64,000 nt of DNA from Macrostomum lignano (taxonomy: Eukaryota): assembly GCA_002269645.1 (NCBI GenBank), contig NIVC01000172.1, positions 210,558 to 274,557 on the forward strand, written 5' to 3'. The position numbers and the translations under genes were made by a program. Of this stretch, positions 33,201 through 35,979 are shown piece after piece. The stretch's first letter is position 1. Each line of letters starts with the position of its first letter. The notes below the pieces were generated by a model. It worked only from the letters and a program-made list of their open reading frames with translations, was not told where the DNA came from and did no database searches.

Positions 33201-35979
33201 CTCGGACTCGACCGCAGCAATCTGATGTCCGGAAGGCCCGAGAACTCTGCAGTTTAGCTTGTCCATCAGGTCGATTCCCATCAGGTCATCGCCGTCCATG
33301 ACGACGGTGAAGGTGAACAACGGGAGCTGGACGCAGTCGAACTCGACCGTGGCGTCGACCTCGCCGGCGACGCTGATGCTGGAGCCGTTGTATGACACGA
33401 GCTGTCTCTCCGACGGTCGCAGGGGGACCTTGGGGCCGAAAATCTTCCGGCAGGTCTGCATGTTGATGATGGAGACTTTGGCAGCTGTGTCTACCAACAG
33501 CGGAGTGCTGAACCCGTTGATGCTGACGCTGGCTCTCTTGTACTCGCCCTTCTTGTCCGTGTTGACGGCGAAGATGCTTTGCTGAGCGAACCCTGTCGAA
33601 GTCGACGCCTTGAACCTTCTTCTGAGCCGAGTGCGGTGCCGTGGTGCTGCTATTGCACACGCTGGCAAAGTGGTTGAGCTTTCCGCACTTCTTACACGCT
33701 TTGCCACGGGCAGCGCACCTCGGGTCGCTGCCTGTTCGGTGGCCCGGCTTACCGCAGTGCGAGCAGCAGGGCTCCTGCGATGGTCGCGCTGCCTGGCCTC
33801 TGGTCCCGATCGGAGCTCTCTTGGCCTTGATCTTCCTGATGCCGTCGTCAGCTGCATTCTTGCCGGTCAAGGACTTCTCACTCTGGACAGCTTTTTCCAC
33901 CTGGGCAGCAATCTGGATTGCTCCGTCCAGGGTGAGTTCTTGCTCTAGCAGAAGGCGTTCGCGCACCTTCGCTGATGAAGTGCCGAAGATCAGCTGGTCC
34001 AAGATGAGGTTGTCGTGAAGGCTCTGGAGCTCGCAGTCTCTGGCGGCATGAAGCAAGTTTGCCACGAATGCATGCACGCCTTCGCCGCTCCGCTGGACGC
34101 ACTTCCGGAAGTCATGGCGCTTGGCATACACGCTGACGGTGGGCTGAAAGTGCTCCTTGAGCAGTTTGCATGCCGCTTTGAGTGTCGCTGGAGCTTCATC
34201 TGGGGACTTGATGAGAGTCCAGTAGACTCGCACTCCTTCCCGCCCGAGGCAGTGCATGAGCAGTGCGATCTTCCTGGCTTCTTGCAAGCCGTCGACTCCT
34301 GACGCTAGCAGGTAGGTGTCGAACTCAGCGGCCCAAGTTTCCCATGAAACCACAGGTGTTCCTGGGTTGTCGAGAAATGGAGGCGGTTCTCTGACGTTTA
34401 GTCGTAGCGCTGGCGCTGTGGCGTTGTCAGAGCTGCTCATTTCTAACTTCGCTGAGTTGAGTTTGCAGAATTGCATTGCGATAGCGAGAGTTGGGCTTGT
34501 GGGCCTTGGCTGCCGTGAGTTGAGTTGAATTTTGCGCGGGGTGGGTTTTCGCTAAGTCCCTGCTTGCGATGCCAGTGTTGTGGCCGCTGGCCAAATGAAT
34601 AAAGTCACTTCACTTGAGACGAAGGAGAGGAGAGGAGAGGTGGCTCTCAGCTACAGTGAGCTAGCCAATATATATTATGATGATAGGAGCGCGTAGATGT
34701 ACATCGGTGCGCGTACTTTACATAATAGCATTGAGCATGCACATTCACAACACTCGTCCTGAACTCTCTATGAATCTCACGAGATTATCCAATCTCGTCC
34801 TGAAATCCTTATGCATCTCATAGGAGATTATCCGAAATCTCATCCTGAAATCCCTATGAATCTCATGATACTCACCTCCAGCGACTGAGCCTGCTGAAAC
34901 ACCAGGGGCACCCGCTCGACCAGCAGAGCTCCCATGAGGCTGGGGTTGAGTATCTTCATCCTAGCCAGGAGCAGCGCCGCCACCAGGGTCTTGCCCGACC
35001 CGGTTGGCATCACCAGGACCAGGTTGCGTTGCAGCGACTCGGCGAAGGCCTCCAGCTGGTAGCGTCTCGGCTGCCGGCTGTGTCGGCGACGGCGGCTGCT
35101 GCCATTTTTGAAGCTGTCCTCAGCCACCAGCAGGTCTCGCCAATTGAAATCTTCTGGCCGATCGATGCTGGCGAATTTGATTGGCCCCTGGGGCTCCGGC
35201 TTTCGCGCCGGTTGCGCTTGAGCCTCTTGAAGCAGACTGCGGAATGTCGGACCGAGTGGTTTGCCGATATGTATCGAAATAAATATTTTAATCGATAAAT
35301 ACTTTGAGAAAGTCAGTGTTGTGTTGGCTCATATATAGCTCCTTTTGCTGACAAAGACGGCTTGAGTATGGTGGGACATTTCGTTTGTTAGAAAGTTTTT
35401 AAAGACTGGCTGTGCTGACCCCGCCCATGCAGTTGTTCCTCCCAAAGGGAGGCTCAGTGGCTAGTCTAAATATACTAAAGCTGACATCATCATTCGGTAG
35501 ATCTGCTGGGGCTTGTAATGCATCTTCTATGACTAAATAAACAAAGTATAAAATCATCAAATGTTAAACATTTCAATTTAATCGAACCCACCAGCTACAG
35601 CGTCTCACCTGTTAGAAAAGAACTGCTGCAAGTTTCGCTTCTCAATCTCGACAATTTTGTTTAAAAGGTTGCGAGCTCGGTCCTTGCGACCATATCTCTT
35701 GCCCTGCAGAACAATTTTGTCCAATCCAAAGGCCACAAAACTCGCCCCGGAAGGCCCGTGAGGCAGCTCTTTGCCCAATGGGGCCTGGCAGCCTCGACAA
35801 ACAACTCGGCAAATTCCATGACGCTCCCCAGGCTCGAATTTCAGGGTTTGGCGGGCGGCTACAGCTTCACGTAGCTCAGGCTTCAGTGCAAGGTGAACAG
35901 ATGTTTGTGATTGTATAAAAAAGAACAGTTCATTGACTCCTAACAAATGGGCACAACAGTTTTGGTTGCCACACTGCAT
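9203..35979 (-). CDS. Giant fusion protein: RIG-I-CTD-like Zn domain + DExD/H helicase + RNA-dependent RNA polymerase + terminal nucleotidyltransferase + KH-like/unknown C-terminus (19 exons, ~2,821 aa)
   Basis: Hand-assembled exons: 35979-35609, 35236-34876, 29886-29224, 28421-28134, 27146-26781, 23327-22493, 22235-21839, 21163-20800, 19638-19455, 18730-18565, 17869-17581, 16923-16714, 16264-16127, 15557-15168, 14779-14361, 13824-13002, 12391-11369, 10775-10197, 9802-9203. All 18 junctions are phase-compatible (17 GT-AG, 1 GC-AG), total 8,466 nt, no internal stop. Conserved motifs are rebuilt across junctions (LTD|GCGKIS, VCIGQ|GGPDGM, RLL|VDWAR). Confidence 0.8.
9835..10165. repeat. 23-bp minisatellite filling the last intron of the fusion gene
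   Basis: Unit ggggattttccactaaatgaatt. Confidence 0.9.
10790..11330. repeat. 16-bp minisatellite (intron 17)
   Basis: Unit gatgggatctgaagct. Confidence 0.92.
12200..13420 (-). other. Domain: Pol-beta-superfamily terminal nucleotidyltransferase (Cid1/Cid12/TUTase/TENT-like; exons 16-17)
   Basis: [23 protein letters not shown] (GS plus DxD), RMVPLIRC, third Asp in DCDISMN, then [14 protein letters not shown]|VDWAR, matching the 'L..LvK.Wa' helix, and [10 protein letters not shown]. Confidence 0.8.
12413..12965. repeat. (TTAG)n microsatellite (intron 16)
   Basis: Near-perfect 4-mer array. Confidence 0.97.
14063..14306. repeat. GA-rich purine tract in GC-AG intron 15
   Basis: Low-complexity run of ggggagaggggaaga-type units. 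Confidence 0.85.
14805..15165. repeat. 24-bp minisatellite (intron 14)
   Basis: Unit cagtgcataacccacagaacaccc. Confidence 0.95.
15568..16090. repeat. (GTGA)n microsatellite (intron 13)
   Basis: Near-perfect 4-mer array. Confidence 0.95.
16355..16700. repeat. 35-bp minisatellite (intron 12)
   Basis: Unit ataaaccatgaaatcccaatgaggataattatccc. Confidence 0.92.
16970..17540. repeat. ~24-bp minisatellite (intron 11)
   Basis: Unit gcatagcaaccggaagtagctaat. Confidence 0.9.
17985..18330. repeat. CT-rich degenerate minisatellite (intron 10)
   Basis: Repeated catctctccctccct / cttatctctcctttacct. Confidence 0.85.
18778..19420. repeat. 20-bp minisatellite (intron 9)
   Basis: Unit gcatagcaaccagaaaccct; shares the catagcaacc core with the intron 11 array. 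Confidence 0.93.
19725..20755. repeat. ~22-bp minisatellite (intron 8)
   Basis: Unit ctctgatccctaatcctctgtc. Confidence 0.93.
21233..21832. repeat. (TGTCTTAG)-based repeat followed by (TCTG)n (intron 7)
   Basis: 8-bp units to ~21445, then a perfect TCTG array 21457-21832. Confidence 0.95.
23340..23815. repeat. 24-bp minisatellite (intron 5), split by the Helitron-like insertion; remainder at ~26695-26760
   Basis: Unit tacagtacatattacagactagtt on both sides of the insertion. Confidence 0.9.
23821..26695 (+). mobile_element. Non-autonomous Helitron-like (HINE/Lep1-type) dispersed repeat, copy 1
   Basis: Shares its start (acaagctgttgaaacccgcggattttgaacccggg), CT-rich core, body, and end (ACAG microsatellite then gagttttgatttttata..tagaga) with 46807-49537. 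No coding capacity or TSD seen. Confidence 0.55.
27290..28130. repeat. Degenerate minisatellite (intron 4) whose unit contains the donor-site sequence
   Basis: Units such as atctacccgcaaatcccactcacctatctacttgataatcccctcc. Confidence 0.85.
28450..29150. repeat. ~38-bp minisatellite (intron 3)
   Basis: Unit cagctgacttcaactccccaattctcaattatccccca. Confidence 0.88.
30122..34752 (-). mobile_element. Full-length Ty3/Gypsy LTR retrotransposon in intron 2 of the fusion gene
   Basis: 177-bp LTRs at 30122-30298 and 34576-34752 with TGTTGTG...CACAACA termini; two substitutions seen by eye. Flanks CTCGG/CTCGT (imperfect TSD). TGG-initiated PBS candidate below 34575. G-rich PPT at 30299-30310. Domain order gag-PR-RT-RH-INT. 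Confidence 0.95.
30413..34440 (-). CDS. Gypsy gag-pol (CCHC gag, aspartic protease, RT, RNase H, integrase) with at least two frameshifts
   Basis: gag CSHCGKPGH and [14 protein letters not shown]; protease [11 protein letters not shown]; [16 protein letters not shown]; RNase H SCDSSD..FASRAL; integrase HQGHLG..C..C, DNGRQF, GGVERFN. Frame breaks near 33590 and 32510. Confidence 0.9.
35609..35979 (-). other. Domain: N-terminal RIG-I/MDA5 C-terminal regulatory domain (RLR CTD)-like Zn-binding module (exon 1)
   Basis: Two Cys pairs (CGNQNC ... CRGCQAPLG) about 55 aa apart with an intervening His, then [16 protein letters not shown]. Spacing resembles the RLR CTD by eye. Confidence 0.55.

Follow-up and report, generated by a model that had tools for sequence, protein, structure and literature searches.

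The subject of this analysis is the 5′ end of a giant gene in a 64,000-nucleotide stretch of Macrostomum lignano DNA (contig NIVC01000172.1, forward-strand positions 210,558 to 274,557), which is called the window here and in whose numbering all nucleotide positions are given. The gene spans approximately 26 kb on the minus strand, and its first exon (35609-35979, from start codon to phase-2 donor, as delimited by translation and splice sites) encodes a predicted zinc-binding β-tent module of 123 amino acids that resembles the carboxy-terminal domain (CTD) of the RIG-I-like receptors (RLRs). The ATG is located at 35979-35977 and is preceded by an in-frame stop four codons upstream. The translation begins with MQCGNQNCC and ends with FFSN, and every string that an initial annotation of this DNA had quoted for a zinc module in exon 1 is present in the translation of 35979-35609. 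At its 3′ end, the exon reads ...AAC AG/GTGAGA (the slash marks the splice site), with the GT of the donor at 35608-35607; when the frame is read through past this donor, it is shut by a TGA stop within two codons. Intron 1 (35237-35608, minus strand) is 372 nt long and of the GT...AG type, and its acceptor (ccgcag/T at 35237/35236) regains the frame into a linker, which is followed by helicase motif I (MPTGSGKT).

Exon 2 (34876-35236) encodes this linker, in which a [DE]F-x-W motif is conserved, and the beginning of a superfamily 2 (SF2) helicase (motif I, PTGSGKT), as assigned by Pfam (DEAD/ResIII) and tblastn colinearity. Exons 3-5 (29886-29224, 28421-28134, and 27146-26781, i.e., within 26781-29886) add the DECH box, the insertion domain, motif VI (QSRGRARR), and a pincer-like helix after motif VI, which is similar to the start of the RLR pincer. 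Splicing of exons 2-5 is GT-AG throughout and in frame. Pfam recognizes DEAD/ResIII and Helicase_C on the window exons, and the closest named relatives of the helicase are Dicer-like and LGP2/DHX58 helicases. Residues 1-123 of the window protein make up the module, and from approximately residue 180 the helicase follows. Farther downstream on the same strand lie the exons of a eukaryotic RNA-directed RNA polymerase (RdRP) domain (PF05183; 15165-21156; Pfam E-values of 1.8e-14 and 4.2e-26, and tblastn) with its DLDGD catalytic loop near 15300, followed by the palm of an MTPAP/TENT-like nucleotidyltransferase (NTase) with the motif GS...DVD (13038-13412, wider span 12963-13904). The latter matches PF22600 with an E-value of 5e-7 (30.3 bits vs a cutoff of 27) and is colinear with the NTase of the relatives. 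The gene ends with a conserved C-terminal region of approximately 700 amino acids (9335-12397, minus strand), which aligns in tblastn with Hydra, Prorocentrum, and an ENA relative and for which the Pfam scan gave no matching family.

The linkage of exon 1 to the helicase was judged from the splice signals in the window together with the gene organization of the relatives. When five full-length relatives were compared with the window by tblastn, strictly colinear blocks were obtained from 35979 down to approximately 9335 on the minus strand, with zero internal stops in the aligned blocks and with an identity to the window gene of at most approximately 60% in every block. The proteins of the relatives, among them ones from Hydra, dinoflagellates, and diplonemids, measure 2,300-2,700 amino acids, and in three full-length ones Pfam places the helicase at residues 160-600, the RdRP at 1040-1700 (E-value approximately 1e-126), and the MTPAP-like NTase at approximately 1780-2030. 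In Hydra vulgaris (LOC105846402), residues 1-700, comprising module and helicase, are encoded by one uninterrupted exon. Furthermore, a search with the spliced 683-residue N-terminus of the window gene retrieved the metagenomic proteins P0001 and P0003, in which module and helicase form one open reading frame (ORF); each is followed on its contig by an RdRP ORF, one of which also encodes an MTPAP-like NTase. The marine TARA/ENA contigs, among them L006 and L007, show module and helicase as a single ORF followed by the RdRP. The module-helicase unit was thus fused to, or placed directly before, an RdRP in six of six loci (the window, L001, L002-4, the Hydra locus L005, L006, and L007). The order module-helicase-RdRP(-NTase) recurs in every locus examined, and the splice model described above is the sole reading of the window that reproduces it. 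The exon 1 module is confirmed, as far as gene structure can tell, as a genuine N-terminal exon of the helicase gene, which supports the initial annotation in joining it to the helicase exons. As read from gene colinearity, helicase, RdRP, and tailing enzyme are predicted to be in a single chain. The polypeptide of approximately 2,500 amino acids probably comprises the CTD-like module, the SF2 helicase with its pincer-like helix, a spacer of approximately 400 residues, the RdRP, the TENT-type NTase, and the conserved C-terminal region.

When 1.84 billion representative proteins were scanned exhaustively with HMMER, for which the 123 amino acids of exon 1 served as query, 52 homologues of the module were obtained at E ≤ 1e-3 (10 at E ≤ 1e-10), far beyond chance, the best having an E-value of 7.9e-16. 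Nine homologues are 2,299-2,737 amino acids long, and the module match is found at their residues ~4-120. A word-indexed homologue search was nearly empty with the single sequence as query, and the 40-sequence profile gave three matches, so that the family came to light only in the exhaustive scan. Carriers of the module include H. vulgaris, the dinoflagellates Prorocentrum cordatum/Polarella glacialis and Effrenium voratum, the diplonemids Diplonema papillatum and Sulcionema specki, an ochromonad stramenopile, and the cryptophyte Rhodomonas salina. The named members of the family are currently annotated as uncharacterized or as RNA-directed RNA polymerase. From a family alignment of 40 sequences, to which all conservation figures refer, the consensus MxCxxC...LxFYxKxxKxVHLxxKPE...K....CxxCxxx[VL]GxxxPFGPxGxxFxAFGxDKVxLxG....KKxKW.....IExR....FFG was derived. 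Two cysteine knuckles are separated by approximately 50 residues. The first (35953-35973, minus strand, read directly from the sequence) comprises C3 (35973-35971), C8 (35958-35956), and an extra C9 (35955-35953), so that the window has CX4C(C), with C8 and C9 at 35958-35953, where the family has CX2C. The second (35788-35799) is C61-R-G-C64, followed by the conserved xxxLG and a P-x-G-P loop. C61 and C64 are invariant, the column of C3 is 100% and that of C8 97% Cys, and all four zinc-ligand cysteines are retained in the window copy. At least 90% conservation was found for C3, C8, E35, G69, G75, and P76, and one Trp column is conserved at 92%.

Two of the metagenomic relatives deserve mention for the way in which the module appears in them. 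The marine protein P0084 (L007, 59-2458) has approximately 550 residues before the module and a double-stranded RNA-binding domain (dsrm, residues 170-233); strict N-terminal placement of the module is thus not universal, and it can occur together with a classical domain of that kind. For P0001, the called start cuts off the first zinc knuckle, and the frame upstream of it (L001, 9971-10000) reads MNCNGCNRKI-; automatic gene calls may consequently under-report the module.

The peptide of the window alone gave zero Pfam matches and zero PDB sequence matches at E ≤ 10, and no Pfam-A family covers the module in the scan of the window and three full-length relatives. The family profile, on the other hand, produced weak matches to PDB sequences (E-values of 0.02-1.6), of which all relevant ones are zinc β-tent proteins, namely MsrB, Mis18, YPEL5, and the CTDs of LGP2, DRH, and RIG-I. 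The alignments to MsrB, Mis18, and YPEL5 end at residue ~74-77, whereas those to LGP2/DRH, the longest, reach residues 104-116. When 10 members were scanned, the best score for RIG-I_C-RD (PF11648) was 21.6 bits (gathering cutoff 25.6) and that for Yippee-Mis18 (PF03226) 23.6 bits (gathering cutoff 26.6), both of which are below their cutoffs. RIG-I_C-RD usually aligns over member residues 2-105 or 2-113 (for example, 2-113 to profile positions 4-115 of 117), and Yippee-Mis18 over residues 2-70 only (profile positions 4-71 of 108). An RLR-CTD profile was built from ten CTDs and validated on the MDA5, RIG-I, LGP2, and DRH entries of the PDB, which it recovered at E-values of 1e-32 to 1e-9. When the family was compared with this profile by hhalign, a probability of 94.5 and an E-value of 7.4e-8 were obtained over 101 columns, with both cysteine pairs in register. 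The single-sequence controls did not discriminate, as the family aligned to human YPEL5 with a probability of 40 over 21 columns and to the human MDA5 CTD with a probability of 32 over 64 columns; the YPEL5 sequence used is 121/121 identical to 8qbn_Y.

The fold was predicted with AlphaFold2 without templates, using only family sequences, and the resulting models, which are predictions rather than experimental structures, were compared with the PDB by Foldseek. The mean predicted local distance difference test (pLDDT) was 95.7 for the window module and 95.3 for its Hydra orthologue, with a predicted TM-score (pTM) of 0.88, and each model is made up of ten strands with two short helices. The five highest-ranking matches of the window model are the DRH-3 CTD (6m6s) and RIG-I (9ktw/9ku4/7jl3), with query TM-scores (TMq) of 0.51-0.58 and probabilities of 0.99-1.0, followed by cereblon CULT (0.29-0.47), MsrB (0.26-0.38), and Mis18 (0.28, rank 45). 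For the Hydra model, ranks 1-40 are all DRH-3, DRH-1, MDA5, RIG-I, or LGP2 (TMq 0.50-0.59, probability approximately 1.0, best E-value 4e-4), and the first CULT domain appears at rank 41 with a TMq of 0.37. Across both models, these other β-tent folds reach TMq values of 0.24-0.47, and YPEL5 is not among the top 50 matches of either. A search of the predicted viral structures in BFVD gave nothing meaningful, the best match being a giant-virus MsrB with a TMq of 0.31. The closest structural match of the modeled module is thus the RLR/DRH CTD, reproducibly across two models, which agrees with the fold that the initial annotation had proposed. We regard it as highly likely that exon 1 encodes an RLR-CTD-like β-tent domain of a helicase-RdRP protein.

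Conserved basic residues suggest what such a domain may bind. K/R columns are found at window positions 33 (90%), 53 (90%), 58 (55%), 88 (70%), 98 (82%), 99 (72%), 101 (82%), and 115 (94%), and the window copy has a basic residue at eight of these eight positions. The hhalign register aligns positions 53 and 58 with the RLR lysines that precede the second knuckle by 6 and 3 residues and position 101 with the invariant K of the RLR "KW"; in human RIG-I, we take the equivalents to be K858, K861, and K907. Because conserved basic residues of the module align with phosphate-binding lysines of the RLRs, the binding of RNA ends, including those with a 5′-triphosphate (5′-ppp), is plausible. The CTD of Caenorhabditis elegans DRH-3 uses a Lys-rich loop to bind the 5′-ppp RNA that RdRPs produce, the residues that bind the 5′-ppp being the run K988-K993 and R1016 (PMC8464030). 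We lean, by a small step, toward RNA-end binding by the module, as its aligned residues suggest, and consider specific recognition of 5′-ppp possible but rather doubtful; the coupling of sensing to amplification that the initial annotation had put forward is likewise hypothetical. By analogy with the RLRs and DRH-3, the conserved basic surface would grip an RNA terminus, for which the best candidate might be a blunt duplex end with a 5′-triphosphate from unprimed RdRP synthesis and the alternative a foreign 5′-ppp RNA. The module could then cap the duplex end and seat the adjoining helicase on the duplex, with which it would cooperate from the opposite side of the chain, and such capping may aid template selection or the holding or release of RdRP products. 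Taken as a whole, an RLR-CTD-like zinc module that heads a single-chain RdRP protein and probably grips an RNA terminus is the best explanation and a reasonably probable one.

Several observations weigh against this reading. In the per-member Pfam scan, Yippee-Mis18 was matched by 27 of 40 members (best E-value 4.7e-5) and RIG-I_C-RD by 22 of 40 (best 8.9e-5), all below the gathering cutoffs, and the window sequence itself matched neither of the two Pfam families at E ≤ 10. When the hhalign comparison was split, all of the signal came from the portion that ends with the second knuckle (probability 94.8), which is shared by the β-tent families, and the C-terminal third alone gave no signal (probability 0.4), for which reason the "KW" match was dropped as independent sequence evidence. 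The β-tent families have also been described as roughly equidistant (Lupas et al., PMC4287342). Sequence comparison hence places the module in the β-tent superfamily and does not single out the RLR CTD. The choice between RIG-I_C-RD and Yippee/Mis18/CULT, which the initial annotation had put forward as a check, is accordingly answered in favor of the former by the Foldseek comparison of folds, whereas at the level of Pfam sequence matches RIG-I_C-RD and Yippee-Mis18 are tied below threshold. The Foldseek E-values, too, are modest (4e-4 to 1e-2). As for the ligand, the column aligned to K888 of RIG-I is Gly in 60% of the members, and no conserved aromatic residue was found in the 40 sequences at the site that the hhalign register aligns to F853, which in RIG-I stacks on the terminal base pair. 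Moreover, the order of module and helicase is opposite to that in the RLRs, which makes it less certain that the module would reach an RNA end held by the helicase. In the window copy, residue 102 (35676-35674) is an Ala in the Trp column that is conserved at 92%, and residues 52-55 (35826-35815) read E-R-H-G, with R-H replacing K-K-K before the second knuckle. These departures from the family could be a sign of lineage-specific specificity or of relaxed constraint.

The module might instead be a protein-protein or regulatory β-tent domain, i.e., a Yippee/Mis18-like oligomerization unit or an autoinhibitory "repressor" lid that dimerizes or gates the enzyme. Yippee-Mis18 is indeed the commonest weak Pfam match among the members, the PDB profile search lists Mis18 and YPEL5 with E-values of approximately 0.05, the Yippee-like domains of Mis18 are reported to oligomerize (PMC4818781), and the RIG-I domain, too, was originally described as a regulatory domain (PMC4287342). 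The Yippee-Mis18 alignments nevertheless end at approximately residue 70, the structural rank of Mis18 and the absence of YPEL5 from the top 50 of both models do not favor such a relationship, and a nucleic acid ligand is favored by the eight basic columns conserved within 120 residues, taken with the module's constant association with an RNA helicase and a polymerase. We therefore consider a regulatory domain of this kind unlikely. Far less probable still is an allosteric sensor that would bind a small ligand, perhaps a nucleotide, in the β-tent pocket, as cereblon CULT does with uridine/glutarimide and MsrB with methionine sulfoxide. In the PDB profile search, the lowest E-values belong to MsrB (0.023-0.029), CULT is the next structural class after the RLR CTDs, and the location of the binding site is common to all β-tent families (PMC4287342). 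However, the TMq values to CULT and MsrB remain at 0.24-0.47, and the MsrB alignments span just approximately 25 residues around the second knuckle. An MsrB enzyme was rejected since the four zinc ligands are the only conserved cysteines, leaving no catalytic Cys, and a CULT ligand cage was rejected as well, since Trp is conserved in just one column, where the window has Ala, and the cage would need three tryptophans.

Two further readings concern the window gene rather than the fold. The module or the entire gene might be decaying, or be expressed otherwise than modeled, with exon 1 as a relic or with a different partner. This would be in keeping with the lost Trp, the altered first knuckle, and the less basic loop before the second knuckle in the window copy, with the presence in intron 2 of a young long terminal repeat (LTR) retrotransposon that is oriented like the gene, and with the lack of an identical or near-identical protein among a collection of 15 billion proteins. 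Yet the five N-terminal exons are all open, GT-AG, and in frame; open colinear frames continue over approximately 26 kb through RdRP, NTase, and C-terminus; the zinc ligands and the eight basic positions are all kept; and AlphaFold2 is confident for the window sequence itself. Decay or a different gene model is hence quite improbable. That exon 1 is an ORF which contains cysteine pairs by chance, or encodes an ordinary zinc ribbon that has nothing to do with the neighboring helicase, would fit the failure of the window peptide alone to match Pfam or PDB sequences but is scarcely credible given 52 homologues with conserved non-cysteine positions, a module that always lies 5′ of the same helicase-RdRP gene, and a confidently predicted 10-strand fold that is not a ribbon. 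A chance ORF was rejected on the grounds of the homologue family, the tblastn colinearity, and the single exon in Hydra. Coding sequence derived from a transposable element was also rejected, as the LTR element is located in the next intron and outside exon 1.

The RLR-CTD-like module that we favor can be compared with known systems on several points. With the CTD of RIG-I, MDA5, and LGP2 (PF11648) it shares a length of approximately 120 residues, two cysteine knuckles approximately 50 residues apart for one zinc (predicted in the module) in a two-sheet saddle (the β-tent), basic residues at −6 and −3 before the second knuckle, a K-W pair near the C-terminal end, and an RLR/Dicer-type helicase within the same chain. 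Unlike in the RLRs, however, the module is N-terminal to the helicase and without the pincer-CTD linkage, its Pfam score is sub-gathering, the equivalents of RIG-I K888, H847, and F853 are not conserved, and the window-type protein has an RdRP and an NTase and no domains for caspase activation and recruitment (CARDs). The initial annotation had proposed that the module precedes the helicase and replaces the CARDs; the placement before the helicase stands (residues 1-123, with the same order in all relatives), whereas replacement holds for the position alone. The module further differs in its occurrence in dinoflagellates, diplonemids, cryptophytes, and ochrophytes in addition to Hydra, as the RIG-I domain has been reported to be detectable in animals only (PMC4287342). 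Because it falls below the PF11648 cutoff and differs in position, the module is classed here as the closest structural relative of the RLR CTD and not as a member of that family. C. elegans DRH-3, the CTD of which is the top structural match of both models (6m6s, 6m6r), is alike in that an RLR-type helicase with a CTD works with an RdRP. In the DRH-3-RdRP module of 22G-RNA synthesis, by contrast, helicase and RdRP do not share a chain, and the CTD stands at the C-terminal side; DRH-3 also has its own worm-specific N-terminal domain and an extra C-terminal helix, and the identity in the structural alignment is 11-19%. Yippee/Mis18 (PF03226), cereblon CULT, and MsrB have in common with the module the pattern CXXC...CXXC-xxx-[LVW]G, the core fold, and weak reciprocal sequence matches, as expected for a superfamily (PMC4287342). 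They differ in that only the first ~70 residues align, in the low TMq values given above, in the aromatic cage or catalytic Cys that the module does not have, and in not being known to be tied to helicases or RdRPs.

Fusions of helicase and RdRP are already known from Dictyostelium (RrpA/B/C), peronosporomycete oomycetes, Hydra, and Nematostella (PMC4791657, PMC3661229). In these fusions of the RDR-gamma type, an N-terminal DEAD/DExH helicase with Helicase_C precedes the RdRP (PF05183), which is also the order of the window gene, and the Hydra fusion protein LOC105846402 is a direct full-length relative of it. The published descriptions of them give Pfam helicase and RdRP domains alone and leave the N-terminal zinc module and the C-terminal NTase unmentioned. 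In the literature on helicase-RdRP fusions and cnidarian RNA interference (RNAi), no mention of the module or the NTase was found, with incomplete coverage, so an earlier mention is possible. What appears to be new here, given the modeled fold, is where an RLR-CTD-type domain occurs, namely in another position and another protein context and over a much broader range of taxa.

In complexes of the RDRC (RNA-directed RNA polymerase complex) type, such as Rdp1-Hrr1-Cid12 of Schizosaccharomyces pombe and Rdr1-Rdn of Tetrahymena, an RdRP, an SF2 helicase, and a non-canonical nucleotidyltransferase are separate subunits. We know of no RLR-CTD-like domain in these complexes. The window-type protein has the same three activities, in its case in one polypeptide headed by the zinc module. 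As predicted from the gene, one chain would unite the components of an RNAi RdRP complex, namely polymerase, helicase, and tailing enzyme.

RLRs are usually regarded as an animal innovation. The arrangement shared by Hydra, dinoflagellates, and other protists hints that this type of sensor is older than animal immunity. In a more far-reaching scenario, which we offer as speculative and unlikely in its entirety, the RLR-type helicase with a zinc CTD would predate animals, through origin in early eukaryotes or through wide spread, as the front end of a helicase-RdRP-NTase amplifier of RNAi whose module reads the 5′-ppp or blunt ends that arise from unprimed RdRP synthesis; animal RLRs and nematode DRHs would then be derivatives in which the polymerase was lost, the module moved behind the helicase, and amplification was swapped for signaling. 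If the module does bind RNA 5′ ends, a testable link between RNAi amplification and RLR-type sensing would be provided, which to our knowledge is so far known from nematode DRH-3 and its RdRPs only. It would also hint at how the poorly understood giant RdRPs choose or hold RNA and would provide an outgroup for reconstructing the origin of the RLRs. Moreover, the annotation of the gene family is corrected, as the module and the NTase are added to proteins that are listed as "uncharacterized" or "RNA-directed RNA polymerase".

Intron 2 contains a Ty3/Gypsy LTR retrotransposon (30121-34752, minus strand), which has the same orientation as the gene, lies outside the gene product, and was identified by its LTRs and by Pfam matches to reverse transcriptase (RT), RNase H, and integrase. 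Its ORFs encode a gag with CCHC knuckles, followed by protease (PR)-RT and then RNase H-integrase. The LTR cores of 178 nt (30121-30298 vs 34575-34752) are 99% identical, and the element looks like a recent insertion. Micro- and minisatellites crowd the introns and flanks of the giant gene (21444-21840, 22446-23900, 15560-16120, 24000-25600, and 5700-7450), with repeat units that include (CAGA)n, 24-nt units, and (TCAC/TCAT)n; they give rise to long spurious ORFs on both strands and to strong local GC/AT skews. Upstream of the gene, an AT-rich region (33% GC) contains an ORF of 289 amino acids with an RNase H of the non-LTR retrotransposon type (37542-38411, plus strand), and an exon of an amino acid permease (AA_permease_2) starts on the opposite strand to the module gene at 41557-41934 (plus strand) and onward. 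At the other end of the window, a rhodopsin-family G protein-coupled receptor (7tm_1), which points to an animal genome, is encoded at 3849-5242 on the minus strand over two frames (profile positions 2-140 and 150-260), separated by an intron or a frameshift.

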